64,000 nucleotides of DNA, from NCBI GenBank assembly GCA_010909165.1, contig MU008164.1, positions 248,001-312,000 on the forward strand, written 5' to 3'. Origin of the DNA: Anthoceros angustus. Lineage: Eukaryota; Plantae; Anthocerotophyta. Shown one piece after another: positions 6,674-48,266 of the stretch; the first letter of the stretch is position 1, and every line of letters starts with the position of its first letter. The position numbers and the translations under genes were made by a program. A model generated the notes under the pieces. It saw only the letters and a program-made list of their open reading frames with translations, did no database searches and was not told the origin of the DNA.

Positions 6674-6740
6674 AACACAATAATCCTGGAAGGGGGTTAA
6701 TATATGAACCCCCTTCCACACTAACCAAACCCCCTTCACA
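6674..6740. mobile_element. Left terminal inverted repeat and subterminal repeats of a Sola-like element (probably the one encoding transposase T1)
   Basis: AACACAATAATCCTGGAAGGGGGTTAATA resembles the TIR at 22597 (AACACGATAATTTTTGAAGGGGGTTAATA) and is followed by AACCCCCTTC repeats. The partner TIR was not found in the window. Confidence 0.6.
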
Positions 6741-7979
6741 AAAAAGACACCGTTCCTGAAATGCGCAATCTGGCGAATCCACCGTCACCAGCACCATGCT
6801 AAATACCATTTGCCTCGGAAAACTTAAGATTCAACAATCCATAAAACAAATAGGACTTTGTTGGCGCCGGCTGGCCGGCGCCAGCCCGGAAACTTCCTTG
6901 CCCACGGCTATGGTTAGAAACAAGTAATGAAAGGAAATCAAGATCTCACAGTTTCAAAAACCTCTTCTGTCCCTCCAAAATAGTCTGCCCTCTACAAAGA
7001 TCCCAGGAGGGCCGGTCGAGACTCATCTTGTGCTTGGGTGGCCAGATCTAAAACAAGCTGCCAGTTGCGCATGCGTTCAATTCTACGTCGGAGGCTGGGT
7101 TTACGCGGGGCCCCGCTTCATCATCTTCTTCGTTGTCTCCTTTGTCGCACGAGGTAAGCACTTGAATTCATATAAGCACTTCCTTGACCAACAACCAAGC
7201 AAACAAATCTAATACGCAGACATATAGGTGCAACCAATAACAACAGGAGGGAGTAGCTCGCACGTCGTGGCACAAACACACTCTCCCCACGAGAACAACG
7301 CGCAAATTCCTCACACATCGCTCTCGGAGTCATAGCTTTGGCCTCCTCACAACGCTCTTGCATTGCATATATAGAGGACAAGCTATGATCTGAGCTTGTC
7401 CTCAATGGAAGGGTCTATATATACTAGACCCTGGCATCGGCATATTCCTAAGATAACATGCATTACGAAGGGGTTTTCCTCACAAAGGGGTTTTGGAAAA
7501 ATCCCAACCCTATTCCGCCAAAACAAGCTGGGTTGGTTTTTGTTGAGTTTTGTAGGTGTTCATCCATCGGATTCGGGCATTCGGCTCGGACCACTTCTGT
7601 CCGGTCATCATTTACCGCGGTGGCGCCTTGCACTCGTGTTCATGGATAATTTGTCGGTGTGATGAAGGGCTGTGTAATTCTTCCATAATTTCGGCATGTC
7701 GAGTTTCGCAATTTGTGTGGTTCTATATGTTTTGTATACCAAGTGGGGGCTAGGCGCGCGGAAGTGCGCGCCTAAACAAGGGTATGCGCAAACTTGTGCG
7801 CGCACAAGGCAAAGCAGTCGAAATATATCATTCGATCGAGGAAATATGTCTTCTTGGAGGTGCATGGATGTGGCGGAAGCCCAGGAGACATAAGTTGCAC
7901 AAATCGCGGGCGTCCACATAGACACACCTCATCTATCTACCCTATGCCCTAAAGCTACGAAGAATACCCTATCACCTTT

Positions 7980-10900
7980 CTATCCTCTACGGTGTTTCCG
8001 TCTCCTTCGACGGTGACCTTGTGCCGGATCATCATCAAACATGCCTTCAAAAGCACCAGTAGCCGTCCCGGTTCCGTTGCCTCTGCCGCGGGTTCTTGTT
8101 GCGATTGGTGCTGAACTGGAAGTCGGATGTCTTTCATCATCAGCGCCCGCTTGTCGAACTACAGCACCCTTATTTTCGGGATTTTCATCCGAATCAGCAT
8201 TTTCCTCCAATGCAACTCTCTCTGGAACTGGGTGGTCTGCCCTGTTATCTTCAACCCTATTACCTTCTTCCACGGCTGGTAGATGTTGAAGTTCGAACAG
8301 CTTTGTCTTGATGAGCTCCTGTGTACGGACTTGTAGAGTGCTATCCCTTGCAAAGGAGAACCCGTATGCCAAAATAAATGTCTCCGATATCAACATCGAT
8401 CCGGTGCTTGGTCGCTTCCTCCGTTATCGCAAACCCTCTCTATCAACTGTGGAGCCAATATCTCCTCGTAGGTACCTTCCCTCAAACGCATTGCTATTCT
8501 CTGTCACCCACCACCGGACAACTAGGTAAGGTTCGTCACATAAGAAATCCAAGTCTTCGACGCAATCCGAAAGGCTGTACGATCGTCATCTCACATGGGG
8601 ATGCAATCATATGGCCTCGTCGATCTCGGACACATCCCCATCGAATCTCGCCAACTCGATGGTGCGGCTCCCGTGGCCTAAAATTCCGATACATGTGGCC
8701 AGTTGCGGGGTTCGAGCTGCGGAATGACAAAGACATCCGAACGTCGATGGGATTTAAGTTCCGCTCGGCCTCGTCCTGTTGTACCACTCCCATGCTTTTG
8801 AAGATCTCGATGGACTCCTCCTCGATTTTTCGCAAATATCGGTGATGCCCGAGCGAGTTCCACCATACTTTGTCTTCCGAGATAGATATTTTTGCATCGG
8901 TTCTTGAGGGCTTTCCTAATGGCTCTCAATGATTTATGCGGTCGTCATGGTTTGCCATGCGATTGAAGTGGACATAAAGGCGCTCCCCTTATATCTGTTG
9001 GTATTCTCAAGGAACTCCAAACCCTCCAACGGTTCCCAATGTGAACAAGTAGAAAGTGCCTTGCCACCGAAGCTCACATTGCCACTCTTTCTTCCCTTGA
9101 AATTTTGAATTGATCGATAACTATGATTGTGCAAATTCCTTACGCATCTCGTGTCCTCTTTTACCCATCCCATTGGGCGGACAAAGCTCGAAATCGGCCA
9201 CCTCGAAACCATTTTCACTTCCGGATTGGGTGTATAAGCGATGAATCAAACTCATAAGGGTTTCGAGTGACATTGCTTTTTGTGCACGAGACTTTTAGAA
9301 AAGCACGAGAACATTTGATCAATGCATCATGTGTGCCCGACAAGAAGGAAGCCCACCTTCACCTTATCGAAGACCCGCTTCTCGACAAGCATACTCAAGT
9401 ATGCAAACAACAACATATTCTTGTTTTCTCCGCCGTGTTGTCCGTTGCAAGTAAAACGTCTTGGCGAACCATCTCATAGGTGAGAATAACATCACGGATG
9501 ATATGAATAGTTAAGTTGGCGTCGTTCGAATATTCGGAAGTTCACAAACACCGGTCTTCATAATGTTGTTGTATACCAAACAACCCACAACATGGACCCG
9601 GATGAGACCATCCGCAAAATCCTTTGGAGGCAGGAAAATGTGGAGCTCCGTCTTGCTTTGGTCCATCCGTCTATCGCCATTCCAATGTATTTGCTCGGTT
9701 GGCCTTTACACTTCAAACGATGTTTTGCAAGTTTTAGTCGCTCCGATCGCCGACCGATGTTCACGAGTTGCTCATGGACCTCATCACGGTACAAATGGAT
9801 CACATGGTCGAATTTTCCTTGGTGCGCGGTGCATGGACCCGGCCTGCGCGCACAAGTGCGCGCGCACGCTTGTGCGCGCGCGCGCGCGCGCGCGCGCGCG
9901 CGCGCGCGCGCGCGCGCACAAGTGCGCCCACCCACGGTGCGCGCGCGCGCGCGCATGCGCGCGCATGCGCGCGCGCGCGCGCGCATGCGCGCGCGCGCGC
10001 GCGCGCCGCACGTGCACGAGTGCGCGCGCGCGCGCACTCGGGGTTCCACCTGCGCGCACCGGCGGTGTGGGCAAGCAAGGGCGTTGGAGTGCTCATGATT
10101 CCATGGAAGTCAAAAGGAAACTCGGATATGAAATACCTTGTTCTTGTCGGTTCTTTGGTCATCTCGATGCTGTCTTCAACGTTCGCATTGGACGCATTTT
10201 GAAAAGCTACACTTTGGTATCTTCACTTTTGGAAAATGTTTCTTCCATAAGGCACAGTGAGAATGAGAGGCGTTGGTCAAACCACTCTTGAAACCTCCGT
10301 TTGTAGTCACGGAATATCTCTCCTTTGGTATATGAATCGGCAAGTTGAAAAGCGAAACATTGGGCATTTTTTTAGCTTGAAAAACTTTTCCATCCAAGCA
10401 ATGCATTCCAGAACATGATCTTCAGTTGGGCGTCCTTGGAACTTCAATTCCGATGACCATGGTGTGTTCGTTAGTACTCTCTGTTTCAAATGTTCATACC
10501 TTCGCCATCCAATGCAGAACACTTTTCTGAAACTTCGTACACAACATTGCAACCTGCTGTCTCCCAGGAGAAAATTGAGAACATTGCGACCAGTAGAGTT
10601 TGCTTGTTCTACCTCGAGCAATCCTTGCAAATATATTTCCTGCTGTTCTCGAGGCAATCCCAAGAAGCGATATCTCAAGCTCTCTATATTCTTCTTTCCC
10701 AATTGCAGCAAACAACCGTTGCTACAGCAATGCGAAGGCCATGCGTTATGTATTTCCTCAATGCTGCACAGCTTCATGGTCCTCTTCATTCTCCGGCTTG
10801 GATAATGTCTACGCTTCACCGGGCAATGTTCACTCGACGTTCTGAAATTGGCGTGGTCTCCAGAATCCTTGGCCTACATTCTCTCCCTTCTCCAACGGGA

Positions 10901-11200
10901 GTTGTATCGATTCTGAGAGACCGATGCCTTCCATGCTCTGCAGGTGGTGTCCATGATTGTCACCTTCTCCACCTTCGCGGCCGCAGAATCTGAGGCGGCG
11001 GCTACACCAAAACATCCATCGTGATACATTGTCACACATCCATCGGCTGTATGGCCTTCCAATTGCCCCTGGGACCTGCGACCGCAAGAGTAGGTTGGAG
11101 AAGCGCTGTGCATTTCGATAGCTCTTCAAACTTCGCAGCGAATGTCAAGCAACTCTGAGAGGAAGAAGAGCTTCGTATTTTGCAGTTGTCCATCTTCGTT
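7980..11200 (-). pseudogene. DDD transposase T1 (Sola-like), spliced, frameshifted
   Basis: N-terminal CC..C region (SHCCSNGCLLQL), LWKKHFPKVKIPK..FSKCVQC, AIDG(M)DQ at ~9670, DNT..ENKN at ~9430, GFLLVGHTHDA(I)DQMFS at ~9330, and C-terminal ETFILAYGF at ~8380. Intron donor CAAG|GTATTT at 10136. The 5' limit is approximate. Confidence 0.85.
9845..10036. repeat. (CG)n / alternating purine-pyrimidine tract inside the T1 intron
   Basis: Pure GC alternation at 9874-9917 (44 bp), with further runs to ~10036. Confidence 0.95.
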
Positions 11201-13365
11201 TGAACCTTAAAATATCCATAGATGATTATGGTGGCAGGTTTAACCCGTTATAGTAGCCGCCCATGTTAATTACCGAACGTTCAGCTTGAAATAAAGGCTA
11301 TAACGGAAACCTAGACTTAACCTTCAACCGCGATTAGTTAACCGTGGTTAGCCAAGCTGGTTAATGGCAAGCTTATTGTGCCCGAAACAAACAAAGTTGG
11401 AACACCATAAATTATGAAGGGGGAATATACAAACCCCTTCAAGGAAAAATAACCCTTTGGAAAAGACACCATCCACAAATTGCGGAAAACGGCTGGTTTG
11501 ATCTGGACACCGTTGTGTATGCATATCCTAGCGGAAAACCAACTAAAATGGCATCCCCTCAAAACCCACATGGCGCCGGTGGCATCGCTACTAAGCGAGC
11601 GCATAACAACAAAATTTGAGAAAAGACCCATTGTTAATTTTAAGAGGGTCGAAAACATCCGAACATGCGGTTTTCTCGTAGAAGCAAATCGCAAAACTAA
11701 ACACCAACACCGCTAAGCATAGGCGATTTTGCTAATCGGTCTCTGATGTTCTATCGCGAGGATTGTTTGAGAGTCCACCATTGCATCCACCGGGCCGAAT
11801 CTTCTACAAGTGCCAAATTCGCATGCGCTCCATCTCCAAAGTAAGCTATCATTCGCACAACGCCTCCGGTCTTCATTGATGTCATTTTGGGTGTCGATGG
11901 TGGGTCGGCCATCTGACAAAAAGTCCAAAGTCCATCCTCCATAAGTTCGCGGTTGTCGTCTTCAACCTCTTCGCACTCAATGCGACTTGGGCTTTCAAGC
12001 GATCTTTCTCGCTAATACATACCTCTTTGCCCATCGATGGTCCCCTTGAGTGCGGCTCAAAAGTCGCTCCTCGTCACATCGGGCAAGACATCAACGCCGT
12101 GTATGCGGGCAATGTTCACTGCATCCTAAATTGGCGTATTCCGTAATCCTTGGCCTACATTCTCTCCCTTCTCCAGCGGAGCATCGATTGAGACCTTCCG
12201 ATGCCTTCCATGCTGGAGTGGTGTCCATGATTGTCACCTTCTCCACCTTCCGCCACCAACACGGGCGGCTACCGCAAAACATCCATGCGTGATACATTGT
12301 CAGGACCCCATCGCTTATGGCCTTCCAATTGCCCTGGACCTGCGACCTGAGAGTAGGTTGGAGAAGCGATTTCGATAGCTCTTCAAACTTCGCAGAATGT
12401 CAAGCAACTCCGAGAGGAAGAAGAGCTTCGTATTTTGCTTGTCCATCTTCGCTTTGAACCTTAAAATATCCATAGATGATTATGGTGGCGTTTAACCCGT
12501 TATAGTAGCCGCCCATGTTAATTACAACGCTCACATTGAAATAAAGGCTATAACGGAAAACCTAGACTTAACCTTCAACTAGCAGTTAGTTAACCCGTGG
12601 TTAGCCAAGCGATGGTTAACATTCATGCCAAGAAAGAAACAAACAAAGTTGGAACACTATAAATTATGAAGGGGGAATATACAAACCCCTTCAAGGAAAA
12701 ATAACCCTTTGATTTAAAAGACACCATCCACAAATTGCGGAAAACGGCGGTTTTAATACGTATACACCGCTCGTGCATGCATATCCTAGCGGAAAACCAA
12801 ACCAAAAAATGGCATCCTCAAGACGAACTCCACATGGCGCCTAAGCCAACACAAGTAACAACAAAATTTGAGAAAAGACCCATTGTTAATTTTAAGAGGG
12901 TCGAAAACATCCGAACATGCGTTTTCTCGTAGAAGCAACTGCAAAACTAAACACCAACACCCGCTAACCGTGATAGGCGATTTTGCTAATCGGCGTCTGA
13001 TGTTCTATCGCGAGGGATTGTTTGAGAGTCCACCATTGCATCCACCGAATCGAATCTTCTACAGTGCCAAATTCGCATGCGCCCCATCTCCGTAAGGCCA
13101 AAGCTATCATTCGCACCCAAAGCCTCGGTCTTCATTGATGTCATTTTGGGTGTCGCCGATGGTCGGGTCGCCATACAAAGATCCAAAGTCTGTCCATCCT
13201 CCATAAGTTCGCGGTTGTCGTCTTCAACCTCTTCGCACTCAATGCGACGACTTGGGCTTTCGCCTTTCTCGCTAATACATACCTCTTTGCCCGTAATCGA
13301 TGGTCCCCTTCGGCTCAAAAGTCGCTCCTCGTCATCGGGCAAGACATCAACGCCGTGTATGCGCT
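10821..13365. repeat. Tandem duplication of ~1.27 kb that includes the element junction (TTGG plus left TIR)
   Basis: Units 10821-12106 and 12107-13365. GGGCAATGT occurs at all three boundaries (10821, 12107, 13366). Confidence 0.9.
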
Positions 13366-16300
13366 GGGCAATGTAACCTGCGCATCTCAAGTCCGCCTCT
13401 ATTGCAATACAGTTCCGGCCACACAGCAACGCAGCTAGTGTCGTAGTCCCACTGCCTGAGCATGCATCAATAACCCAGTCTCCCTCCTTGGAGAATGTCC
13501 TCACGAGTTTCATCATAAGACCCAATGGTCTCTGGTATGGGCACACTACCAACTTGTCATGAGACAGGTAAACTGTTTCTTGACGACAGTAGGGTGTCCA
13601 ATAACAAATCTTCCATTGTTGAAGGTCCCGTGCATCACATTTGGCATCATGGCAGCCCTGTCCTTCGAACATCCATCTTTCACACCCCATCCAAGCATGT
13701 AACGTATTCCACGTCTCAAATCCTCCTCTCGTTGTTCATGTTAGTCTTATCCCAAATGAATGACACCAAGCCGCCTTTGGCACACCACTTCGCATAGCCT
13801 CCCTTACCGTATGGGCTTCTTCAACACCATGCATGACGATAATTCGAAGTCGTCATTTTCCGCTTTCTCCGAAACTTTGGAACACGGCACCCATCATGGA
13901 TAAATCCATTCGTTTGTCCATTGGCCCGATGTCAAATCCACGGGAACATCCATGACCGAAGGGTGTATTTCCTTCCCTCAAAACCCACGCATGTCGAGCG
14001 TTGCGGGCTTCCACAATCGGACTGTTTCTCGATCGGAACATTGAATATCTGAGTCCTTCTTGCAAGTCCTTATCCGCCAAAGCCCGCTGCTCATTCTCTA
14101 AGCCCTTCCAATTATTGATCTCGAAAATGAAATGGCGAAGTCGTCGGGCGCTTTGTCAAGACCTCCACGTCCTTGATTCTTGCCAAACCAAACAACTGTT
14201 AGAATGCGCGGCTCAAGCACCTCACAACTAATAAGCGTGGGGCGCCGGCCGGCCGCGCCCCATCCGATCCGCGATAACGCCAGGCGCCGGCGGCGCCCCT
14301 CGCTTATTAGTGGAGTAGCCGCGGCGGCCGGCGCCGGCGCCGGCGCCGGCCGGCCGGCCGGCCGGCCGGCCGCGCCTGCCTGACCTGACCGGTGGAGGGC
14401 CGGCGCCGGCGCCCGCGTGATCGAAGATGTGGGCGCGGCGCATGATGATCCGGACATGCGGGGCGCCGGCGGCGCCCGAGAATTAAAATGGAAAGAAGGT
14501 GGAAAATGGCTTACCTTTCCGCAAATGCCGTTTGGAATCGCGAGCATTTCATCGATTGAGTGGGGATACTCTGCCGAACCTCTTCAAAAGAAGAGCAACC
14601 CAAGTGTTTAGCCATCGCCACTTGAATAATATGGAATTTCTTCGAGCGATATATCGTCATCCATTCCTTTCAGGTCAATGAGACCTGCCAGCACTTTCTC
14701 CTGCGGTGATAAGTATCTGCTGCCCACACTCCCCCGCTGGAATCCCTTGAAATGATTTCCAAGGCTTTGCAAGCATATCTTTTGGCTTCACATAGACAGT
14801 GTCTATTTTGTTAGCCTCGTCGGTCACTTTCCGCTTCACCTTGCTCTTCTTGCTTGTCCCTGCTATCACATGCTTCTTCCGCAAATGCCGTTTGGAATCG
14901 CGAAAGCATTTCATCAGTTGAGTGCTGGGGATACTCCTGCCGAACCTCTTCAAAAGAAGAGCAACCCAGGTGTTTGGCCATCGCCACTTGAATGATATGG
15001 AATTTCTTCCGAAGCGATATATCGTCATCCATTCCTTTCAGGTCAATGAGACCTGCCAGCACTTTCTCTATAGCGGTGATAAGTATCTGCTGCCCACACT
15101 CCCCCGCTGGAATCCCTTGAAATGATTTCCAAGCATATCTTTTGGCTTCACATAGGCGATGTCTATTTTGTTAGCCTCGTCGGTCACTTTCCGCTTCACC
15201 TTGCTCTTCTTGCTTGTCCTGCTATCACATGCTTCTTCGCTCGCAACTCCCCTTCCCACTTCGTAAATATCTTGTCTACATTTTCCCATACCCTACCCTC
15301 TTGTTTGATGCATAAAATGTGTCTGTTGTCAACCTTGTTACATTTATAAACATCATCTTCGCGTGCTTCATCATCCTCAATAAGCCCCAACACCTTATAC
15401 AAGTTGAATTTCCATGTCATGGTCATCTGCACACCATCCCGTTTCGCAATAATCAATTCATCACGCAAATACCTCACCTGCTCTATAAAATTCATCTTCG
15501 CTTGTCAGACATCGTATTATGGTCTGTGGCGAGGACTCGCATCTCCTGTACATTGAGACCACAGTACACATGAGCCTCCACATACTGAAACCGCTTTTTG
15601 CCCGGAGAGATGTCTGCAAGATGCTTCATTGCCGCATAAGTGTGGTTTCCTCCAAGGACTCCCATGACATATTTTTGGCCCCGAATCGTCTAGTTTTTCC
15701 ATGTCATCACACTCCGGATCAATCATACATAATAAAGGCAAAACGCCTCTTCAATCCTCCTTTCGATATAACACGCGCCAAATAATTGGCCCATGCTTCA
15801 TCCACCCTCCGTGTCATGCATCGGCGTCGTGCGATCGGCCGAAGGTTCTCCAATTTCACCAGACCGTTTCCAATACTACCTTCTTCGCATATCTTGCTTC
15901 TCGACCCGTGTCAAGGGTCTTCATCCGGATAGCTTCCGCAATCCTCTCTGATCTGTCACATGAGAATGGGAATGTCACCCACATTTTCCACCCTCTGCGG
16001 TTTGTTGCCTTTCCTCTTTGCTTTTGCGGAGGATGGTCCTCTCTCCTTCCTCCTCGATCTTCTTGAAGATCCGCCTTCCTTTTCCCTTAGGCCCTTCCTC
16101 CTCTCTCGCCCTCTGTTAGTCATAAGCGGGCGCCGCGGCCGGCGCCCCCATGATCGAAGATGTGGGCGCGGACAATGATCGGACATGCGGCGGGCGCCCG
16201 GCGGCCTGAGAATTAAAATGGAAAGAAGGTGCAGGAAAATGGCTTACCTTTCCGCAAATGCCGTTTGGAATCGCGAGCATTTCATCGATTGAGTCTTTGG

Positions 16301-18760
16301 GGATACTCTGCCGAACCTCTTCAAAAGAAGAGCAACCCAAGTGTTTAGCCATCGCCACTTGAATAATATGGAATTTCTTCCGAGCGATATATCATCCATT
16401 CCTTTCGGTCAATGAGACACAACACTTTCTCTCATTCGGTGATAAGTATCTGCTGCCCACACTCCCCATGGAATCCCTTGAAATGATTTCCAAGGCTTTG
16501 CAAGCATATCTTTTGGCTTCACATACAGTGTCTATTTTGTTAGCCTCGTCGGTCACTTTCTTCACCTTGCTCTTCTTGCTTGTCCTGCTATCACATGCTT
16601 CTTCCGCCTGCAACTCCTTCCCTTGTAAATATCTTGTCTACATTTTCCCATACCCTACCCTCTTGTTTCGCGATGCATAAAATGTGTCTGTTGTCAACCT
16701 TGTTACATTTATAAACATCATCTTCGTGCTTCATCATCCTCAATAAGCCCCAACACCTTATACAAGTTGAATTTCCATGTCATGGTCATCACGCACCATC
16801 CGTTTCGCAATAATCAATTCATCACGCAAATACCTCACCGCTCTATAAAATTCATCTTCCGCTTGTCGACATCGTATTATAGTGCATGGCGAGGACTCGC
16901 ATCTCTGTACATTGAGACCCAGTACATGAGCCTCCACATCGAAACCGCTTTTGCGGAGATGATGCAAGATGCTTCATTGCCGCATAAGTGTGGTTTCCTC
17001 CTAGGACTCCCATGACATATTTTTGGCCCCGAATCTACGGTCTAGTTTTTCCATGTCATCACACTCCGGATCAATCATACATAATAAAGGCAAAACGCCC
17101 TCTTCAATCCTCCCTTCGATATAACACGCGCCAAATAATTGGCCCATGCTTCATCCACCCTCCGTATCATGCATAGGCGTCGGGTCATCTCGAAGGTTCT
17201 CCAATTTCCACCTTTGTACTACCTTCGCTTGCTTCTCGACCCGTGTCAAGGGTCTTCATCCGGATAGCAATCCTCTCTGATATTGTCACATGAGCGGTGG
17301 GAATGTCACCACATTTTCCACCCTCTGTTTGTTGCCTTTCCTCTTTGCTTTTGCTTAGGATGGTCCTCTCTGTCCTTCCCTGCCTCGATCTTCTTGGCAG
17401 ATCCCGCCTTCCTTTTCCCCTTAGGCCCTTCCTCCTCTCTCGCAGCCCTCTGTTAGTCATAAGCGGGCGCCGGCCGCGCCCTCTCCTCCCGCCTCATGCG
17501 ATGGTGCCCTGGAGGCTGCTCTGGTGTGAGGCGCGCCGCGCCGGTTCACCTCCGCTTCCAAGAACTGCGCCGCGTCAAGAGCAGCCTGCCTCACGCTGGC
17601 CGGCGGCTCGGCGCCGGCCGGCGCCCCTCAACCACCTCCGGTGATCGCAACCCGGGGTGTTTCATAAGGCATGAACACCCCGCATCCTCGTCTGTTGTCG
17701 TCCAATTTTCTTCATCCGAGTGCCCCAGGATATCAGGCATTGGCCCATAGTCTTCATCCTCGGGGCCGAATTCGGTGCCCTCCTCGTTGTCGCTTCTCTT
17801 CCTCCTCGTCACGCACCTCGGCTCTTGCGCGCCCAGGCGCCATGACCCTCTGTTTGAGCATTTGTGTGATTTCCGCACACGTCCACGATGAACGCATTCC
17901 CCATCACGAGCCTGCGCAATGAACAATGCTCAGTGTTAGAGACAACCGACAGAAGCAAAAACATTGGAAAGCAGAAATTGGATCAGAGTTGCGAATACCG
18001 ATTGCTCCCGCCTACATTCCCGAAACAGCTGCAAAAGCCTGGCAGGTTCGCACTTCTTGATCACAAGATTGTTGAACCTGATCTCGAACATTCTGTATAG
18101 CTCGGGACCCTGTGGCACCGCATCAAATTCTTGGGGCCTTGTAATGCAGAGCAACTGTGCTACAGGATCCCCATTCGACATGTCCAATGTTGCCCACACC
18201 ACCCCCTTGCCGTTGATTCGGTGCATCCTTGTAACCCATAATCCACAGCTTGTATAAGCGTCAAAACATGCTCGTCTTGGTTGCGGATCCTGAACAACCA
18301 TCCAATCCTTGTCCAAGACCTTCACGCATCCATCCGAGCTCCAGGCCGAATGTAAACTCCTCGTATGGCGAAGGAATAGGAGCCACCCTCTTCCCACCCT
18401 TCTCCACCTTCTCTCCATGGCCTCCCAGTTTTGTTGTGGAAGCCTTTGCCGACCCAGCTTCCGGACTTGAGTGGTCTGGAAGGCCCCCTGCTGCCAGCTA
18501 GCATGTCCTCCCAAAGGCAGAGGTCTTCCATGCAAATCATCGGCGCCTTCTAGCGTCTTTGCTTTCCCTCGTTTTCTTCGTCCTCTCCTGCGGGCTGGGA
18601 TCCGGATTCGGTCGCCAGATCCTTCTTGCTTTCGCCCATCGCCATCACCTTCATTTCAAGATAGGCCAATTCGGATGGGCCTTCCTTCTCCACAATGTCC
18701 GCAATTCCAAGCGCGTCAATGGATTCACAACCTGCAAACACGGAAAGTGAAAACCACAGC
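12986..18760 (-). CDS. M1: ParB/Srx-like domain fused to a beta-class N4-cytosine/N6-adenine DNA methyltransferase; multi-exon, with indels and internal tandem duplications
   Basis: C-terminal CPYQRPLGLMMKLVRTFSKEGDWVIDACSGSGTTTLAALLCGRNCIAIEAD (motifs X-I-II; DACSGSG at 13448-13468). Motif IV-like VMDVP(R)GFD at ~13940-13955 needs one inserted base. N-terminal RRVDEAWANYLARVISKG and VLGGNHTYAAMKHL at 15630-15659 (duplicate at ~16980-17008). Intron donor GTAAGC at ~14511 and acceptor at ~14223. The 5' end is uncertain. Confidence 0.8.
14400..17470. repeat. Nested tandem duplications inside the M1 gene
   Basis: A ~360-bp pair (14517-14876 / 14877-15236, junction TTCCGC) and a larger pair (~14400-16137 / ~16138-17470, junction in GGCCGGCGCC). 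Confidence 0.8.
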
Positions 18761-21700
18761 GCTACGGCAGTCCCTCGCCCAATTTCTCCGCGTTCCTGCT
18801 GCAATCAAGGGGTTAGAGATGGCGCTCGCACTCTGTCACTCAGAAGTCGGACCTCAGCGCTCCGTCGCAAAGGGAATTGCTCGCCGTTTCTGTGAGGACT
18901 GGTTGCGCTCCACGCCGGTTTTGTATGCCCGTCAAACTTGCTTTTTTAAGCGCCCGGCCGTAACTCGTTCACCTCTCCACTGAATAATTACTTTAAGTTA
19001 GGGTTTCCTGGTTGCTCCAAATAGCCGATGGTTCGAACCCCGGTGGGCACATTATTCACGCCGCCATGTTGTACATACAGGTTAACGTCTATCGCTTTTT
19101 CCCATTGCGTGTTGGTTTGTTTTAATTACAAACCATAATGACTTTCCCGTTACTTGCCTCCACTGCAAGCATTAGTAACTTAACGACGTTTTCTTCAACA
19201 ATGGTTTTATATGGTTGGTGACTGTTATCCAGCAAACGGCCTCCCAGGAAGGCTTAGACATTTCAGCGTATCTGATGTTAGAATGAACCTTGCCTTCTTT
19301 CAATTCCTCCACTATCGTCCTACCTCGGAAGACGCCCAACAAAATGCTTCGCGCCACTCACTCGCAGAGGACGACGATGTAAGTCTTCGACTGCTTTCCA
19401 GTCGAATGTCGTCGTCGTGGATGCGTTGCGCGGTGCAAACATGTCCTCATTCCCCTGTTTGATTGTGCAGCTTGACTTTGCGGATGGTGAGGGTCAATCC
19501 CAATATGAAAGACATCTTCCAGAAAAGCAACGGACGAGGAGAAGAGCGGACAATGCCCCAGCGTCCATGAGTCACAAGACATCTCCGGTTCTCCTCGCGC
19601 CACTCGGGTCCCCAGGTTTGTTTCATCACCGGATCTAATGGAGGTTGACTTTGTGAATTTTATCCTCTACTAACCCAAGTCTTTGCACACCAGTGCCGTC
19701 GGAGGTGGCCGACATCGCCGGCTCTCGGCCTCCCCTACCATTCCGAGGTGCTGCCAGGACACCAAGAAATCTTAACCCAGTATGCCGCCTGAAGGATCTC
19801 CATGCAAACAACGGTGTGAGCAAGCAGCTAGAAACCGAGGCCCTCCCAAGGGTGGGCTCGAATGCGTGGAGGCATTGTTCGCTGGGTGTCCGCCACGCAC
19901 CATCGACGAGCGAAGAATGCGGCAATCCCATGAGGAGGCGACGATTTCCAGTCCGGACATCGACATCCGCCATCTTATCACCCCAAACCAGTGAGACTTT
20001 GGTGTGCAGACTACGAGTGTCCGGTGCAAGAGGCGAGCGGGGTCTCAATGAGGAAATGTGAAGTCGAAAGTATCAACATTGATTTGAAGGCATGTTGCAA
20101 TCGATGTGTCTCCAGTTGACAAAAGAAAGGTTTCGTGAACAACGATATCGCTATTTACGGATGGGGAGGCGAGCGAAACATTTTGGAATCCGATACAGTT
20201 GTGCGGCGATCCGGTAACGTCAAGTTGTGACTCATCTTGGGGCCGGATCCTTTTAGATCTTGCTTGCGCCTTGAGAGTGTATTGCCTCGGCCACAGGTAT
20301 GAAGAGTTGAAGAGTAGAGTCATCGAATGCACCGTGGGATGCTATGAGGCCGAATCCAAAATGATCTCACCATGCATTAAGTGCAATAGCCCGGATGGAC
20401 AATGCTTTCCTCAACATGGTGAGAGACTTCCAAATATCGAGGTCTTCAACTTACCCGACACATACACAAAACTAGAAATTTGGAGTGAATATAGGCGGCA
20501 TTGTGAACAAAGAGGTCGGTGATGCGTGACCTACAGTTCTTGAAGCTATGGAAAGGGCACTTCAACAGGGTAAAGATTCCAAAGTCTAACAGATTCTCTA
20601 CTTGCTCGCTGTGCGCTGGATTGAAAACAACTATACGAAATACAATCTCAAAGGTTGATCAAGGTAAGTTACATTGTTATCCTTATCCCTTGCTTTCCAG
20701 CATACAGAGGGTTGTTGACCATGTGGGCCAAACCCTCAATGGCAGTGGTATATGTAGTATGTGAATGTGCCCCGCTTGTGGGACATGTCCCAGTGGGCCC
20801 GGCGCCCACCTAATGTCTGTTACCTTATCTAAGGAGGGTTCCCCTGGTCATGCGGGCGCCGGTCGGCCCTGCTACCCAAGCATGTGCCTATGACATTGCT
20901 TGGGCCCCGGCATCGAAGGCACCGCTATTACCATCTCGACCTTGCGGAATGAGGTCAGGGGCGCCGGTGGGCGCGCCAACCACATTACAAGTATTCCTTT
21001 GGCCGACCTTCCGGGCTTGGAAATGCGACAAATGTGTTCGCCCATTATATCATTTAAGGTCCGTCGTAGGGTGGAGAGGGGTGGAGGAAGGTCAAGTTGG
21101 CGTGTCCATGACATACATTGCCACATGTCGGAGAGTGATGCCACGATGATTCTTGGACATCATACTATGTTTTTGTCTTGTAAGTTGACAACTTTAAAGG
21201 GCTCACAAACTACGGTGTGCATATGTTATGTGCGAGAAATATCAAACGATTGGGCCACCGGACAAGCGTGCGAAGATGACAAAACACCGGAGCAAGAGTT
21301 ATGTTGAACCACATAAGTATATGCTGCTATGTATCGATGGCATGGACGAGAAGAAAGCGAGCTACCGCACATGTTGAGGTGGCCGAAAAACCTAGACGAG
21401 GAATGCCGCATTTCGTTCACGTGGTGCATGATCCACAACTACACCCACAAAGCCACGGCGTTTTGCACGCCAACCTCCGGAATGATGCCAATTTGACTAT
21501 CGTCATTCAAGATGTCATCCACAACTATGATGGTGTGCTGCCCAAAGTGTTGTATTTGCAACTTGACAATACATGTCGGAGAACAAGAATCAGCTATTGT
21601 TTGCATATTTGAACATGCTCGTTGATATGGGCACGTTCGAAAAAGTGAAGGTGGGATTCCTCTTGGTTGGTCACACCCATGATCAAATAGACCGAGATGT

Positions 21701-22949
21701 TTTCCTGCTTTTCCAAAAGCCTTAAACACAAAGAAGCGCTACACTACCGTATTGGCAGACGTGCGGAGGCATATACTCCTCTCGGAGGTGAAGGTTCTGG
21801 AGGTTCAGTTCGGACATATACATGTCTGAGCGAGACGGGGAGGCAAGTATGCGGCGGTGAAGAAGTTGAATAATCTGTCATACCGGCGTTCAAAATTACG
21901 CGAGGACAAACTGTGTGGTCCGATCATCGAGCAAGCGGATTCAACTTCACCGCTTTGGGAAGCGGAGGCGAGTTTGGAGTTTTAAATTTCGTTCCTTCGA
22001 GGCCATAACGGTAGCTTTGATGTCCTTACGTGCAGGATAAAAAGGAACCGCGGGCACTCACACCCAGAAGGTGTGGCTCATTTGAAGGATGGGTTAGTGG
22101 GTTTGCGACCTTATGTAACGTAGAGTACAAGTGGTGGGAAGAATTCAGGTTGACCGGAGATTGCTTGTTATTGTCGAAAACCACATCGGCCTTGTTCGGA
22201 CCGTCCTTGGAAATGGTTCTCCCGTCTTTGAAGAGGAAGAGACAACGACCTTCATGTACGATGAAGCTTTGCTAGAAGAGCCTTGAGGAGCTTCCCCAGC
22301 GAGATATGTACCGGAGCATATCAAAACATTGGAAGGCAGCGTGAAATGGCGCTTGAATGGCGATATTGCGAGATCAAGAAGGAATGTTCCTCGCGTTATG
22401 CCACCGACATACACAGACCTTTACGGATTGGGAAAGTAACGGACGTGAGGTTGGATGCACCACAACCTCACTTTCTTATCCAACGGTATCGGACGGATCA
22501 TACGACGTCTGGCGGTATGTAGAGGAATATATACTACGAGGAAGCCGCAAACAAGATGGACGCAGGGAAAAAGGGGAATAAGGTATTTTATCCCAAAACA
22601 CGATAATTTTTGAAGGGGGTTAATAATCTCGAAGGGGGTTTTCCGCAAATAATCTCTGAAGGGGGTTTTTGATGGGCCCTAAAACAGCGTTTTGAAGGCA
22701 TTGCGGAAAACAGCTCCGAAAAAAGGGTGTCACAAGAAAGTTACTACTTTCCATCCAAAGAATGTTTGTGTCGAATGGTGGTAAACTCGAACCTAGGGAA
22801 TGATGCAAAGTAGGAGCGGTGAGGAAGGCCGTTCGGGCGGGACGATCAGAACTCGCTTTGGGATGGAAATGTGGTTTTGTTATGACACCACAAAAGCCAC
22901 AGGTGGTATTTCCTAACACGAAACATCGAACCGGACTTACAACATTAAC

Positions 22950-23770
22950 TCGGGACCCCGGAAAACGAGATTTCCACTCATCCCGAGTTCAATCCATCGT
23001 CATCACTTGGTCCGCTTCTCCTCCATTGTCATCACTATCTTGACACTTTGACTCGCAGTTGTATGAAGCCACGCAACCAGAGAGCTTATCCCTTATCGCT
23101 TTTTGTCCACCGATACAGATGTTTCCGTATGCTCAACACAAACCCATAATACAGGATGATTTCATTCACAAATACCTCCGTATGTTTTTAGGTAATGGAT
23201 CTTATTCCCTTTTTCCTCGGCATTGGACGGATGGGTTACCACTGGCGGACTATGTGTTCTGCACATATCTCCTTCATACGCATCTATGTGCTCGGTCCGA
23301 TACTAGTGGATAAGAAAGTGAGGTCGTGGTGCGTTTAGCTTCACGTCAATGACCTCCCAATCCGAATGGCCTATGCGTGTCCGTACAGCGCCCGAAACAT
23401 CCCTCTCGGTTTATGTCCCCATTCATCCGCCATTTCCCAGCTTGCCTTCCGCATTTTGATATGCCCCCACATATCATCACTGGGAGGTCCCTCAATAATG
23501 CCTCATCTAGCAAAGCTTCATCCGCACTTGAAGTGGTCAGTCAGTATGATCCACTTCTACACGTGAAAACCACTTCCAAGGACGTAGCACTAGCCCAATG
23601 TTATTCTCCACAATGATAGCAATCTCCTTCCGGTCCACCCAAAAGGCTTCCCACCACTTGTACTCTTCATCACCTATGGATGCAAATCTTTTAACCCTTC
23701 CTGCAAACAGGCCACACCTTCCATCGGTGATAGGATACCCGTTCCTTCTTGTCCCCCTAGCTTCACCCGC
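22950..23770 (-). pseudogene. T3: 3' fragment of a related transposase inside S2
   Basis: The reverse complement aligns with T2 21950-22600 (e.g. YKWWE, GATGAAGCTTTGCTAGA, ACCTCACTTTCTTATCCA) and with 24975-25200. Confidence 0.8.
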
Positions 23771-23779
23771 ATGCACCGT

Positions 23780-24150
23780 AGGATGGTGCTAAGGGAGGCG
23801 CCGGCCGCGCCCTCCCAAGATGCTCGCTCATGGCCGGCCGCCGCCTCCCCTAGCACACTGCAGGGCGCGGCCGGCCCTCCCCTAGCACACCACCATGGCG
23901 CGCCGCCGGCGCCCCCCACACGCCCGCCCATGGCGCCGCCTCCCCTAGCACACGCCCATGGGCGCCGCCGCGCCCTCCCCTAACACCGCCCATGGCGCCG
24001 GCCGCCTCCCCTAGCACACCGCCCATGGGCCGGCCGCGCCCTCCCCTAGCACACGCCCATGGCGCCGCCGGCCGGCGCCCCCACACGCCCGCCCATGGCG
24101 CCCGCCCCCACCCTGCCCACCCATGGGCGCGCCGGCGCCCCCTCCTCATA
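23780..24150. repeat. GC-rich minisatellite (CCTCCCCTAGCACAC / GCCCATGGCGCC units)
   Basis: About six CCCTAGCACAC-type units interleaved with CCATGG(G)CGCC motifs. Confidence 0.85.
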
Positions 24151-27100
24151 GGCTGTCTTCAAGAAAATATATATTTAGCGCCTCAAGAGTGCAACTTGGG
24201 ATTGTTGGTCTAGTGTTTGGGAAATAAGTGTAGTAATGAATAGGTTGTGTGTTCAAACCCGTATCTTCCTAACAACTCAATTTTGTTGATTTTAAGGATG
24301 CTTGCATGGGCGCATGGGCAACTAACTTTGTTCATTTTAAGGACGTTGGCATTGCCTTAAAGCCCAAGTGGTTGCATTGAGTGCGGAAGGTTGAAGACCA
24401 CGATGGCGACCTTTTGGATGAGGGTCGAGATGCTAGATGCGTGTGGCGACACCGTCGGCTGGGCCCAAGAATGATACTATTGAAGACGAGCAAGCAATGG
24501 AGGAGAACGACAACCGAGGCGGAGGATATGGACCGCCTCGAATATGGCGGTGGTACTTGACCCGCCGGCCAAAGGCATGGATGAGTCGCCGCACTCTTGA
24601 ATGGCTATTGTCGATGCCGATGACCACTTCCTTTAGCTTGTTTGTTGCAATGTTCTCACGACCATTGAAATAAGACTCGCTAGTACAAGATTGTTTTCAT
24701 TGTGTTCCACCACTTGAAAGTAAAAGTTTTCGGTTGTAATAAACATATGAAAATGGCAGCCCTCTATGCATTCTACAAAAGCAGACGGGCCCACACCCTA
24801 TTGTGCTCCAGCTCGGGTGTAGACTTGAAAGTGCATCTTTTATCAAAGATATGACCTCGGAAAGGGTGTGTGCATTATCAAAGTAGGGCACATATGTCGC
24901 TCTAGGAAAGGTGTTCTTCGTGACAAGGGGTGTCGTCAAGGTCGATATCCCCCTTCAAAAATTATCGTGTTCCAAAAACATACAGGAGGTCTATGTCAAT
25001 GATACAGTCATCCTTTATTACGGTTTTATTTTGAATGCGGAAACATTTGTATGCGTGGACAAAAAGGCGATCAGGGACAAATTGAGCGAATTGCGGATTC
25101 ATACAACCAGTACCAAAGTGTGGCGGAGGATAGCGATGACAATAATGGGGACGGGCCAAGCGATAGCGTGAACTCGGGGACGAATAGCTATTGACCGTAG
25201 ACTGACCAGCCTGAACCATTCTCATTAGGGGTTGTATGGATGTGGCTCCCCACTTCACGTGTCCATTACGCCCATCCTTTCCAACTTAATCGCGATGGAA
25301 GGGTGGGGGCGCTGGCCGGCGCCTCAATGTTCGTAAGTGCATAACTTTATCTGAAATTGAAGTAGCTGCAATGACGATTGCATATACCACGTGTTTAAGG
25401 ATGAGTATTGATGGACCGTGTCACGCGAATATGGTGCGTGTGATCAGCGGTTTGGGGGTAGTGTAACACCACGGCATGCAACATGACCCCCTACAAGGTT
25501 GTTTTCTATGCCATTCCAAAGGAAGTGGTGACCATGCGATATCAAAACATGTGGAATGTGTCCTTGTGGACATGGCGAGGGGCGCGGCCGCCGCCCACTC
25601 GTGGAACATGCCACGCCGCACCACATCCACCTGTTCAAATTCATTCTGAAGGAACTGGTGCCCAAGTGGATAGCAAACATGTTCCATGTGACCTTCCACA
25701 CAATGGTGAGGCAAGGGAGGGGGCGCCGGCCAGCCGGCGCCCCATCCCTTGCCTCACCACTGTGTTCCGAAAATAGGCGAAGGATCACACATTACACCTG
25801 AACGGGAAACGAAATTTTCTTCCCCATAAATATGTTGATGGTTTGAACCTGTCCGCGAAATTGCATAACCCTTCCATAGTGGCGTTCGATCTGCAGATTT
25901 AGCAATCTGTATTGTTGGACCGGCAGGTGTGCATAGTGGGTCTTGTTTTGGCAACAAATGGTTAAGGGAAGAGGTCACCTTCTACAATATATGAACCAAT
26001 GGAAAACTCGTATGATCCAAGAGCCGGACCCTTTTTCGGTATGGTTTTAATAATAAATGAACCCACAGCTTTTAGACCCATCACCAACCCTCTTCAGCGG
26101 TTATTCACAAAAAACCCCCATCGAGGATATTCCCCCCCTTCAAAATTTATGGTGTTTTGGGTACAAGTGATCCGGCAGTGCGCGTTTTCATGTCCGAGAG
26201 GAATACGGATTGCAGGAGCAAGAGGAATACGGATTGCAGGAGCTGGGAACCGCGACAACAAGAGGAAGAGCGCGCGCAGTCGACAGGAGCAAGAGCGCGA
26301 GCAGGCATCCATGCGTTGGGCTGGAGTGTTCTACGCTGCATCTGCGGCTGATTCTAGCCGCCGCGATCAGGTGTGTGTGCGCCAATCTCGTGCGTAAAGG
26401 CTATGTGCACTCGTGGCGCGCCTGTCCGGCGTCAGGCACCCACGGTGCGCGCTTTCTTGTGGCAGCCACCCTTGGCGCGCGCTTGTGTCTGGCAGGAACC
26501 CCCGGTGCACGCTTTCTTGTGGCAGCCACCCTTGGTGTGCGCTTGTGTCCGGCAGGCACCCTTGGCGCGCTTGCTTGTGGCGCTTGTGTCGCTGCACCCT
26601 TTTGATTTTTGACATGCGCAAGATCCGGCGCCGCTGCCAAATCGATGGTCTCGCTTGGGCGACCGCGTTTTCTGCAGGCAGGGAATCGCGATTGAGGCAG
26701 TGCAATTGGGCATAAGCTTAGGTGGCGTTTGTGGCGGCAGACATTTTTCGATTTTTGAGGGGTGTATACTATAAAGAGAACTAAATAGCGGTTTGTGGCT
26801 CCATAATTTGGCTTGTTCCATGAAATCAAAACACCTTCAACCTTCCTTTGGTCCTTGCTTGGTCTGTATTTGTCTCTGATTTCCTCTAATGCTTCACGTG
26901 TGCATGTCCATCCCATATCGGCAAGTGCGTGCAAAACACGCCAACTTGGTTGAACCTCCACCACAGCCCAAACCTCCTAAACGCAAAAGGACAGAAGTCA
27001 ATGTCGAGGCACGAGCTTCCGGGAAACGGAGGATTGCAGCAGGAGGAGGTGCGGGTGGTGGTCATGACCAACCAACATCCAGACCCACAGCTGCCGTAAA

Positions 27101-45611: not shown

Positions 45612-46400
45612 ATGATACCCGATAGCTTCAAGAGCACATCAATGCGGCAAGAAATTGGAAGAGGGTGGAAGATTGGAGAGAGTCAAGAGGAAGACAACGA
45701 CGCAAAACTAGACATTTTCCATGTTCGAAAAGCAAGCAAAGGTCCGTTACGGGTAATAGCGGTGATATTCGTGAAATGGCTGCCTACTTGGGGAAAAGAG
45801 AATACAAGTGTTGGTCGTCGATTTACCATGGGGCAAATCGGAGACATGGGATAAGGAGATGACATGTGAGGATATGGAGAAGATAATGGATGGATTCATG
45901 ACAATCACGAATGCAAGACTTTCGCGTGATATTTATGCATGGACGAGACGGATGCGGGATGTCCGAAATGCCTGCGAAAATGGTGTGAAAAGGGGGTTTA
46001 TACAATGGTGCAGGAGAAAGACAATTTGGTCTCGGACGAGGACTTTCTGAGAACTGCGAGTACATGTGTGGGGTATGGTGTTCACCCAACTGAAGATATG
46101 AGGTCACGGTGCATTGTCCAATAGTCGGTAGAGATTGGAGCAATGCTGCGTTTATTTGACATAAGCGCGATCGTGAAGAAACTTTTGAATGTGTCCAACG
46201 ATGGCCATGTTGTTTCTCCTTACCAAAAGCCAATAGGGTTGATGGTCCCTATCGACCTATTCACGTAAAGAGGGAATGGGTTATAGATGGATGCTCGAAG
46301 CGGAGTGGAATACTGCGGCATTATCGGAAGGGCGGAACTGATTGGTCTGTTGACCAAGAAAGAGGAGCAATATTCATCGAATGCTGTATTATAGGCCATG
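45612..46400 (+). pseudogene. M4: divergent beta-class amino-methyltransferase
   Basis: DIREMAAYLGKREYK(V)LVVDLPWG (DLPW at 45820-45831), then VVSPYQKPIGLM (46215) and EWVIDGCS (46274). Motif order IV...X-I; frameshifted. Confidence 0.78.
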
Positions 46401-46879
46401 AAGTGTCGTACAACACTATAATATTCATACGGCGGAATTATGTAAGTTATGAAAAAATTGCCGCCGCTTGGTACTTTTCATCTGATTACTAATTCACGAC
46501 AAACACCGCTTTTGAAAGCACTGCCGTGCTGCTAATCATTGATTGGGATTTCAATTTTGTCTCCAAGTTGTTTGAAATGAGGGTGCTAAGGTGAAGGGAG
46601 ACGTCGCTCACAAACGACAATGCTCAGTTATAAGTAGAGTACGTCCGTTCAGATATATTCAAAATAGGCCTCATGGCCAGACACATAACAACTTAGTACT
46701 GGAAGATCCGGGATGACAGCAACTCCAAGGACAGCGCCCCCTACGACATACCGAAAATGTTTTGGCCACCTAAGGAAGTTCAGGGTCCGAAGATTCAACT
46801 GCACACAAACCGGCTACACTATCGGGAACTAAGGTCACGTTTCTAAGACGTTTTTGTCCGCCTTCTCCGAAAGTGTCAA

Positions 46880-47800
46880 TCCATCCATCGCCTGGGCGCC
46901 ATCATCTTCCTTCCGTCAAAGGTTGAGTACCATAGAAGGCCCAAAGGTTCGTTGCCCCTCATCGAGAGGGTCTCCCCTTTCTTTCATTCTCTCTCGACCT
47001 TGGGGCACAATTTGAGCCTTCCCAATATCCTTCTCGCCACGCAAACCTCCTTGGCCTGAATTGAGATGGACCTCGGCGATGCGGCCTGTGTCACCTCCTC
47101 CGCATCCGGCGAAGATTATATCCATGTACATGCCGGAATGAATTCTCGCACATGCATCCAATATCCATTCCCTTCCTTGGAGAATGTCTTGATAAGCTTC
47201 ATCATCAAACCTAAAGGCCATAGGGTAGGGCATAACAAGTTTGTCAAGTGAATGGTATACCGCTTTTTCACAACGATGGTGGGCAATCATCGACCGACCA
47301 TCATTGAAAGTGCCCCGCAAAGCATTAGGTAACATGACACACTGCAACTCGTAGCTTTTCTTGACCCCAACCGAATGACATACTCCCCAGACGAACCCAC
47401 CCTTGTCGTTGTTGATATTTGTCTTGTCCCACACAAATGAAACAAGTCCACGCCTGCACCACTTCCGCATAGGCTCGCACAATATGTGAATCTTCCACAC
47501 CATGCATTATGATCATCCTAAATCCTCTCGCATTCGTTAAGTATTGAAGAAATGCAAAACATTACCCACTTGCCAAGCATCAAACCTTCCATCCTTAGGG
47601 CCCTTGTCGAATCCATGGGACATCCATCACAAGCAAAGAGTACCTCCTCTTCCTCACAAAACCTCGCATATCCCGGACATCTCGAGCATGAACTGACATC
47701 GCACTTTTTCTCCGATCAGGATGTTGAATTGCAACCGTCCTCTTCTATGTCCCTATTCACGAGCTCCCGTTGCTCATCCTTCAAGCCCTTCCATGTGTTG
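46880..47800 (-). pseudogene. M2: beta-class amino-methyltransferase with an internal inversion
   Basis: EVNTWKGLKDEQRELVNRD...YSLLVMDVP; RMIIMHGVED; FVWDKTN; LDKLV..P.LGLMMKLIKTFSKE; WILDACA. Colinear with M1 and M3. Confidence 0.8.
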
Positions 47801-48266
47801 ACCTCATAAATAAACTGTTGAAAGTTTTCAGGGTACTTGGTGAGGACGTAATGTCTTTTGTTGCTGCACAAAAACAAAGTTGTTTGTCAGTATTAATGGG
47901 AGAGGGACTTCGACGGCATGCCCTCCCCGCACAGGGCCTCCAGGGGTCTGGGCCCAGGCATGCCGCCGGCATGCCGCCTCCTCAAAGGCTACCCCTCAGC
48001 ATAGACGCCCCAACTTCCCATTAAGCGGGCGCAGATGCCGCGCCCCAAGCGGAATATGGAAAATCGGGCGTGGGAAGGAGGAAGGAAGAACGATAATATT
48101 TTAAGCGGCTGAATATACATCAAGCAGCTTTGACGTGAATATATGCAAACGGGGTTTTCGAATATTGAAATGCGATTCACCGTCAAGACCCTAAACACGC
48201 CGTAGTGACATTACGCCAGATGCCGGCGCCCCAAGTCATGCCCAAACGTTACGTGCCTTGGCGCAT

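Follow-up and report, generated by a model that had tools for sequence, protein, structure and literature searches.

We analysed a stretch of 64,000 nucleotides from Anthoceros angustus (contig MU008164.1, positions 248,001 to 312,000 of the forward strand), which we call the window and to which coordinates refer unless another contig is named. Its positions 11401-26156 very probably hold a decayed Sola1-type cut-and-paste transposon that carries, opposite to its transposase gene, an ancestral accessory gene for a ParB-like/beta-class amino-methyltransferase (amino-MTase). The element is bounded by terminal inverted repeats (TIRs) with TTGG outside each end. Between the TIRs, the ParB-MTase exons lie on the - strand and the transposase lies on the + strand, i.e., the two genes are arranged head-to-head, as had been proposed in a first reading of the letters of the window (the original prediction). 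That reading also supposed that no such family had been described, which does not hold: Sola1-1_Ec32 of Ectocarpus, a Sola1 transposon with a ParB and N4C/N6A methyltransferase gene on the opposite strand, has the same architecture (Genome Biol 2025, PMC12477816). That is, the family is already described in a brown alga (2025).

Element ends and target site

The ends of the element are defined by the following features.

11397-11400, no strand: left target site duplication (TSD) TTGG, by sequence inspection
11401-11423, + strand: left TIR, outer copy AACACCATAAATTATGAAGGGGG, by repeat comparison
12653-12675, + strand: second left TIR, preceded by the same TTGG-ending flank, by repeat comparison
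10820-13374, no strand: tandem duplication across the left junction (10820-12105 ~ 12106-13374; ~84% identity, 1.25 kb)
26134-26156, - strand: right TIR, by repeat comparison
26157-26160, no strand: right TSD TTGG, by sequence inspection

The outer left TIR AACACCATAAATTATGAAGGGGG agrees with the reverse complement of the right one at 22/23 positions, and 0 such pairings are expected by chance (shuffles). Allowing for one 2-nt indel, the similarity lengthens by about 5 bases to ~28 nt, such that both the TIR length of ~28 bp and the TTGG TSD of the original prediction were recovered. The insertion target can be given as TTGG/CCAA, since TTGG flanks the main element and its reverse complement CCAA flanks a nested relative (see below). 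Subterminal repeats of the form GAAGGGGG occur 10 times in the window versus 2.3 times expected, and all of them are found at element ends.

The left junction falls within the tandem duplication 10820-13374, by which the flank is doubled together with the TIR and the initial ~715 bp of the element, including the 3' end of the methyltransferase gene. For this reason a second TIR with the same flank is present at 12653, and the TSD is TTGG whichever of the two left ends (11401 or 12653) is taken. Measured from the inner left TIR, the element is ~13.5 kb long. Subtracting the duplications and the nested element leaves a core of ~9.4 kb, in accordance with the ~9 kb estimated before.

Transposase and superfamily assignment

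20139-21740, + strand: Sola1-type DDD transposase pseudogene with Cys-rich N-terminal part (Pfam, motifs, homology)
20663 (splice donor GTAAGT), 21336 (first aspartate, D1), 21565 (D2) and ~21690 (D3), + strand: transposase sites, by motif search

The three motifs from which a DDD transposase had been called were all located on the + strand, namely IDGMD at 21333, LQLDN at 21556 and GHTHDQID at 21669. The open reading frame (ORF) 21280-21609 matches the Pfam domain DUF7869 with 27.2 bits, which is barely above the gathering cut-off of 26. The three aspartates align with the matching motifs of Sola1-1_Ec32 and of L005, an apparently intact relative from a metagenome (see below), with the reading frame of the studied copy being broken between them. 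The D2-D3 spacing is ~40 residues, as in Ec32. A BLASTP comparison of a 64-aa Ec32 segment with 21594-21722 gave 17/42 identities with E=3e-9, i.e., for this short segment only. Here, the window reads QLDNT, ~32 residues and VGHTHDQIDR, and Ec32 reads QVDNT, 32 residues and VGHTHIQIDQ. The context of the first aspartate is IDGMDEK in the window versus MMDGANQ in Ec32, and a Cys-rich N-terminal motif was found by eye in both transposases (FMLCKICTLLKSTI in Ec32, FSTCSLCAGLKTTI in the window). A tblastn search with the L005 transposase covers 21264-21740.

Together with the 4-bp TSD and the DDD motifs, this homology points to the Sola superfamily, as had been proposed. We also considered a placement of the element in another cut-and-paste superfamily, with DUF7869 as a group separate from Sola1. 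DUF7869 is the only Pfam label for the domain, no mention of it was found in a literature search, and the TIRs start with AACAC compared to AACCG in Ec32. Nevertheless, the direct match to the Ec32 transposase with its identical D2-D3 spacing as well as the 4-bp TSD make such a placement improbable. Ec32 was classed as Sola1 by its authors, also has a 4-bp TSD, and finds its best BLASTP match in Repbase Sola1-1_PPa (PMC12477816). Furthermore, the DUF7869 clusters that neighbour the transposase in the ESM atlas are commonest in Mucoromycota and Arthropoda, and Rhizophagus is the main reported fungal Sola1 host. What has to be held against the Sola1 assignment is the extent of the homology itself, which consists of one 42-residue alignment, the shared motifs and the classification by the Ec32 authors. 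Neither the methyltransferase ORF nor the neighbouring transposase ORF gave a match in word-indexed protein searches.

Both genes had been described as spliced. One canonical donor (CAAG/GTAAGT at 20662/20663) coincides with a break of the transposase homology, such that at least one intron of this gene is plausible. Several other breaks are frameshifts or stops and not introns.

A second Sola1-type transposase gene lies just left of the element (9255-10819, - strand) and includes a 170-aa Cys-rich N-terminal ORF at 10307-10819. Over 177 residues, its catalytic core aligns in a single frame with the transposase of L005 at 35% identity (E=1e-17). The studied element was therefore inserted beside, or into, a relative.

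Layout and homologues of the accessory gene

15199-15689, - strand: ParB-like domain (VLGGNHTYAA ... DHN ...) and following helical part, by homology; frameshift at 15495-15504
14883-15134, - strand: conserved middle (helical) domain, by tblastn with Ginkgo, Chara and metagenome homologues
13856-14190, - strand: N-terminal half of the methyltransferase with motif IV at 13953-13937, by homology; frameshift near 14137, stop near 13856
12989-13735, - strand: C-terminal half of the methyltransferase with PYQRP, motif I DACSGSGTT and C-terminal tail (Pfam N6_N4_Mtase, E=7e-12)
17939-18655, - strand: 239-aa ORF between the two genes, N-terminal exon or third gene, from the ORF list

Opposite to the transposase at 20139-21740 (+), the exons within 15689-13253 (-) are colinear with single proteins (P0159, P0004 and P0066), i.e., they follow each other in the order ParB-like domain (15689-15199), middle domain (15134-14883), methyltransferase N-terminal half (14190-13856) and C-terminal half (13735-13253). 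All peptides quoted in the original prediction are present on the - strand: VLGGNHTYAA at ~15653 (with a duplicate at ~17001), YQRP at 13537 and DACSGSGTT at ~13456. Only DVP.G needs a correction, since it is readable as DVP(R)G solely across a 1-nt deletion (ATG GAT GTT CC- CGT GGA, 13953-13937).

The methyltransferase call is supported by the profile search that had been suggested for it. ORF 12989-13735, of which the N-terminal ~40 residues are out of frame, matches Pfam N6_N4_Mtase (PF01555) at profile positions 162-213 with the E-value listed above. An exhaustive HMMER search returned 1825 proteins at E <= 0.001. Here, a single ORF was used as query, because tiling the partial ORFs into one profile with MAFFT produced a misalignment. 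Eukaryotic matches that also cover the upstream exons come from Ginkgo biloba (Gb_37443, Gb_14868), Chara braunii (at least 13 paralogues), the fern Adiantum nelumboides and the sea cucumber Holothuria leucospilota; further ones were found in Logan and JGI contigs.

The family profile matches solved beta-class enzymes (M1.HpyAVI, MboIIA, CcrM, RsrI) as well as N4C enzymes, and it aligns D-x-P-Y-G with the DPPY of M.MboIIA. The structure was predicted for P0008, a member of the family with the Arg variant of motif IV discussed below, in place of the broken window copy. Foldseek relates this model, which has a predicted template modelling score (pTM) of 0.80, to CcrM, MboIIA, BceJIV, HpyAVI, RsrI and the rotifer N4CMT (E=1e-12 to 1e-9), the first five being the top matches with E=1e-12 to 1e-10. 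On the basis of these profile and model matches, we take the methyltransferase fold and the beta order of motifs as established for the family. The order itself had been claimed from the letters and is found again: motif IV (~13950) lies upstream of motif I (~13456) on the - strand, and all family proteins show the same order.

For the 239-aa ORF, a SET-domain identity was tried and rejected. The lead came from its ESM-atlas neighbours, which are mostly SET clusters and, despite a score of 0.90, were recognised only weakly. Neither Pfam, nor PDB sequences, nor a comparison with the N-termini of the family proteins supported it.

Recurrence of the transposase/methyltransferase pairing

The original prediction had named TIR-bounded copies lacking the MTase as the sign of a one-off capture. 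We found the pairing in two relatives and methyltransferase remnants in two further TIR-bounded elements of the window.

The first relative, L005 (JGI metagenome 3300064063, contig of 8915 nt), has 28-nt TIRs starting with AACAC that are separated by 8.85 kb. DUF7869 transposase ORFs and the gene for the ParB-methyltransferase P0066 (789 aa) occupy opposite strands, both with open frames. A 243-aa acidic ORF is probably the first exon of its accessory gene. No clean TSD was found in its flanks (ATGG / GATA). The second relative, L004, is located in Chara braunii (BFEA01000586.1, 5663-16351), where a transposase that lacks an annotation and shares 47% identity with the one of L005 faces, head-to-head, the gene of the ParB-methyltransferase P0154, annotated as 'hypothetical protein' (CBR_g44364).

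Within the window, remnants with 66-73% DNA identity are held by the nested element and by a 3.3-kb element at 46412-49681 with TIR AACACYATAATATTCATA (18-nt TIRs AACACTATAATATTCATA / AACACCATAATATTCATA). In the latter, a few hundred bases separate the remnant (copy D) from the left TIR, and the same holds for the gene of the studied element (copy A). The flanks of this element (GTAC / AGAC) show no matching TSD. An extra methyltransferase fragment is present on the + strand at 46005-46340, just outside its left end.

Given the pairing in L005, L004 and Ec32 together with the remnants in two window elements, we are dealing with recurrence and not with a single capture, i.e., judged from these sequences the methyltransferase gene is an integral and recurrent passenger of the family. 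A Pack-type event, in which a single copy captured a host or bacterial gene once, would fit with the window holding only one full-length copy. Two homologues also speak for it and against the recurrent pairing: around Chara P0032 no transposase turned up at distances of up to 10 kb, nor did a Sola-type transposase at such distances around HOLleu_02510 of Holothuria leucospilota (L003, CM055961.1, 10001-17366), which is a member of the same ParB-like/methyltransferase family. Still, such an event is highly improbable in view of the same pairing in L005, Chara and Ectocarpus and of diverged remnants whose position with respect to the TIR is the same.

ParB-like domain

The ParB part is the least secure one of the original prediction. 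In the suggested profile searches, Pfam reports no ParBc match; structure comparison yields mostly ParB-type top hits with weak E-values. Several results weigh against the assignment. The best Pfam match is DUF6551 (E=0.0037, in one member), and a family profile with 192 positions matched no PDB sequence even with an E-value limit of 10. The model of the N-terminal domain, based on 16 sequences, reaches a predicted local distance difference test (pLDDT) value of 63.3 and a pTM of 0.41. With VIA-align, the ParB N-domain scores Z=4.0-4.7 (77-81 residues aligned) and sulfiredoxin Z=3.6, values that the notes of the tool class as uncertain.

On the other hand, 13/14 of the top PDB matches in Foldseek are ParB, Spo0J, Noc, KorB or PadC, with a best E-value of only 8e-3. 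The second half of the model resembles helices of helix-turn-helix type. As for the G-x-x-R / (D)G-x-H-R motif that follows the central strand in ParB proteins, the family reads I/V-G-G-G-H-S-R-E-A-R where strand passes into helix in the model, and the window reads LGGNHTYAA, with no Arg in the motif itself. We consider the ParB-like assignment as likely, in agreement with the published annotation of the Ectocarpus protein.

Motif IV of the methyltransferase

Motif I and the preceding (H/Y)-x-Q-K-P motif (PYQRP ... DACSGSGTT in the window) are invariant in the family alignment. Motif IV differs from its canonical form (D/S/N)-P-P-(Y/F/W/H), and the family reads D-[FILV]-P-[Y/C/H/R]-G. To compare the window copies, we consider beside copies A and D also copies B and C, which form the tandem duplication 51387-54435. 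Copies A, B and C read D-V-P-R-G, and copy D lacks 2 nt at the codon for Arg. Elsewhere, D-L-P-R-G is found in P0008 and DFPYG or DIPYG in Chara, L005 and P0061, with C in Chara paralogues and H in Ginkgo at the same position. For this Arg, copy A uses the codon CGT, copies B and C use AGA, and the unrelated contig L002 has CGA. Retention of the Arg via three different codons suggests a selected residue and not decay.

When copy A is compared with the 34%-diverged copies B, C and D, the proportion of synonymous differences (pS) is saturated (>=0.8), while that of nonsynonymous differences (pN) is 0.16-0.37; what speaks against these values is that the segments were picked by protein similarity, which biases pN low. 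Despite this bias, the accessory gene evidently evolved as a protein, and it appears to have been kept under purifying selection.

With D-V-P-R-G in the subfamily of this genome, conventional N6-methyladenine (6mA) or N4-methylcytosine (4mC) catalysis is doubtful. That is, motif IV has no second proline and, in Anthoceros, no aromatic residue, such that methyl transfer may be absent, which counts against reading the gene as an active DNA methyltransferase. As an alternative, the accessory protein of the plant subfamily would be a pseudo-enzyme that binds S-adenosylmethionine (SAM) and DNA without methyl transfer and acts on the element as ParB-like repressor, partitioning factor or insulator. 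We regard this as a tentative option with somewhat less than even chances. The replacement of DPPY in copies A, B, C and P0008 argues for it, as do C and H at this position in Chara paralogues and Ginkgo, and so does the conservation of Arg via three codons with pN far under pS, which fits a selected state better than decay. Its counterweights are the full conservation of motif I and the QKP motif, a fold that is that of active N6A/N4C enzymes, and the Tyr retained in several members, namely those with DFPYG or DIPYG named above.

Copies B and C are the halves of a near-identical 1.5-kb tandem duplication (51387-52900 ~ 52928-54435) in the region 50800-54435, around which no TIR or transposase was identified.

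Palindromes and proposed mechanism

14227-14480, no strand: cluster of GC-rich palindromes with core GCCGGCGCCGGC, candidate protein-binding sites inside the accessory gene

The 9-mer GGCGCCGGC occurs 34 times versus 0.31 times expected, always inside the Sola-like elements of the window (e.g., at 14241-14470, 23797-24139 and 48222-49025), and builds palindromes such as GCCGGCGCCGGC. Within the 46412-49681 element, the 24-nt perfect palindrome AGGGCGCCGGCATGCCGGCGCCCT is repeated three times (3 x 61-nt array, 48872-49055). Long palindrome arrays are also found directly upstream of the ParB exon in L005 (5676-5941 of its contig) and in Chara L004, where a 680-bp array of ~56-nt palindromic units (12359-13039 of that contig) lies within an intron of CBR_g44364. 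Their sequences are unrelated to the GC-rich palindromes of the window. Inverted-repeat arrays that adjoin a ParB-like accessory gene were also reported for the red alga Bostrychia (bioRxiv 10.1101/2025.02.11.637652). The pattern fits a ParB/parS-like self-recognition, for which the palindromes are candidate sites.

For working relatives we propose the following mechanism. The DDD transposase with its RNase H-like fold would recognise the AACAC... TIRs and the subterminal GAAGGGGG repeats, excise the element and reinsert it at TTGG/CCAA, by which 4 bp are duplicated. The accessory gene, divergent from the transposase and an ancestral component of the family, would encode a protein of three parts, i.e., an N-terminal ParB-like domain with helices, a helical middle domain, and a beta-class SAM-dependent amino-MTase fold. 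Its ParB-like part may bind palindromic arrays inside the element (in the window those of GCCGGCGCCGGC type) and could thereby bring the methyltransferase module to element DNA, either for marking or for regulation of the two divergent genes. A more far-reaching version, which we consider rather unlikely, takes the Arg-for-Tyr exchange in motif IV (D-[VL]-P-R-G) as the mark of a selected subfamily of non-DPPY-like proteins, e.g., a SAM-dependent reader or regulator or an enzyme for another substrate, that together with the element palindromes (GCCGGCGCCGGC type) would provide ParB/parS-like self-recognition in land plants.

By joining a DNA-binding domain to a module that modifies DNA, a transposon could mark itself or control its own activity, which is relevant to how marks other than 5-methylcytosine (5mC), such as 6mA and 4mC, reach the genomes of eukaryotes. 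The palindromes found only in the elements are candidates for such binding that can be put to the test, and for experiments the intact L005 is better suited than the dead window copy.

A further left-type terminus of the same family lies at 6674-6900. It starts with AACACAATAATCCTGGAAGGGGG, followed by GAAGGGGG/CCCCCTTC repeats and AAAAGACACC, and has a GGCGCCGGC palindrome at 6863-6882 and the flank CATT. No partner end was found for it in the window.

State of the copy

14877-17481, no strand: internal tandem duplication (14877-16147 ~ 16250-17481; 88% identity) and a 360-bp extra repeat
22597-24971, - strand: nested 2.4-kb non-autonomous element of a related subfamily with TIR AACACGATAATTTTTGAAGGGGG, by repeat comparison

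The studied copy is dead and both of its genes are pseudogenes. The methyltransferase domain changes frame near 14137, 13943, 13790 and 13660-13580 and is interrupted by stops in frame near 13856 and 13720. A further frameshift lies at 15495-15504 in the ParB exon, and the transposase core has two, one between D1 and D2 and one between D2 and D3. Part of the 1-nt indels could be assembly errors. A working copy, as implied by the original prediction, is thus not what the window holds, given these frameshifts and stops and, in addition, two tandem duplications and a nested insertion.

Beside the duplication at the left junction, the internal duplication 14877-17481 doubles the exons of the ParB-like and the middle domain. 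The nested element is inversely oriented, is flanked by the TSD CCAA (22593-22596 and 24972-24975) and retains parts of both arms of a related element. Its piece 24359-24487 is the remnant of a methyltransferase 3' end.

Comparison with known systems

The closest described system, Sola1-1_Ec32, shares with the window a Sola1 transposase, a 4-bp TSD and the core QxDNT ... VGHTHxQID. It differs by its length of 21.5 kb, its 282-bp imperfect TIRs with AACCG termini and an accessory protein of 1104 aa, which we compared by its description. The window element has a core of ~9.4 kb, TIRs of 23-28 nt that start with AACAC, the target TTGG, and is a dead copy.

L005 and L004 show the same head-to-head gene pair with palindrome arrays adjoining the ParB exon. 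L005 also has the AACAC terminus and, with 8.85 kb, nearly the size of the element core. Both differ from the window in their intact ORFs, a motif IV of DFPYG or DFPCG, and the unrelated palindromes.

The Plavaka/EnSpm accessory genes PAG2 and PAG3 of Bostrychia (bioRxiv 10.1101/2025.02.11.637652) are similar in that they are carried by transposons and combine modules that modify chromatin or DNA with either an N6A-type DNA methylase or a domain resembling ParB, with inverted-repeat arrays beside the ParB-like gene. In contrast to the window, the transposons belong to another superfamily, and ParB is fused to a 2-oxoglutarate (2OG) oxygenase and the methylase to SET, in separate genes.

Bacterial and phage beta-class amino-MTases (CcrM, M.MboIIA, M.RsrI, M1.HpyAVI) and the ParB-methyltransferase fusions of phages and plasmids share with the window gene the fold, the order of motif IV, target recognition domain and motif I, the QKP motif and D-x-F-x-G-S-G-T, and an N-terminal ParB-like module. 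Compared to these enzymes, the window gene lies in a eukaryotic transposon, its family reads D-[FILV]-P-[YCHR]-G and not DPPY in motif IV, and a middle domain is added.

Bacterial-type amino-MTases are also known in eukaryotes from Marchantia (MpDN4MT1a/b) and from bdelloid rotifers (N4CMT), and N4CMT is a structural match. They differ in being host genes, MpDN4MT1 has the motif TSPPY, and no ParB-like domain is reported for them in the literature consulted. For MpDN4MT1, the comparison was one of motifs.

The locus adds that the same type of element occurs, at least as fossils, in Anthoceros and that the accessory family extends to a sea cucumber, to Chara, to a fern and to Ginkgo. New here are, to a modest degree, this broader range of hosts for the accessory protein, TTGG/CCAA as insertion target, the variability of the motif IV aromatic with a conserved Arg subfamily, the element-restricted palindromes, and the intact metagenomic relative L005.

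Further observations in the window

Neither an Rfam match nor a host gene was found in the 64-kb window. It contains four tandem duplications with periods of 1.25-1.6 kb (10820-13374, 14877-17481, 51387-54435 and 56147-59066), some of which are near-identical; they are either the product of a genuine local process or an assembly artefact. The original prediction had also named evasion of 5mC silencing as a possibility; the observed/expected ratio of CpG is ~0.9 in the element and most of the window alike, i.e., there is little sign of a deamination-driven CpG loss in these repeats.

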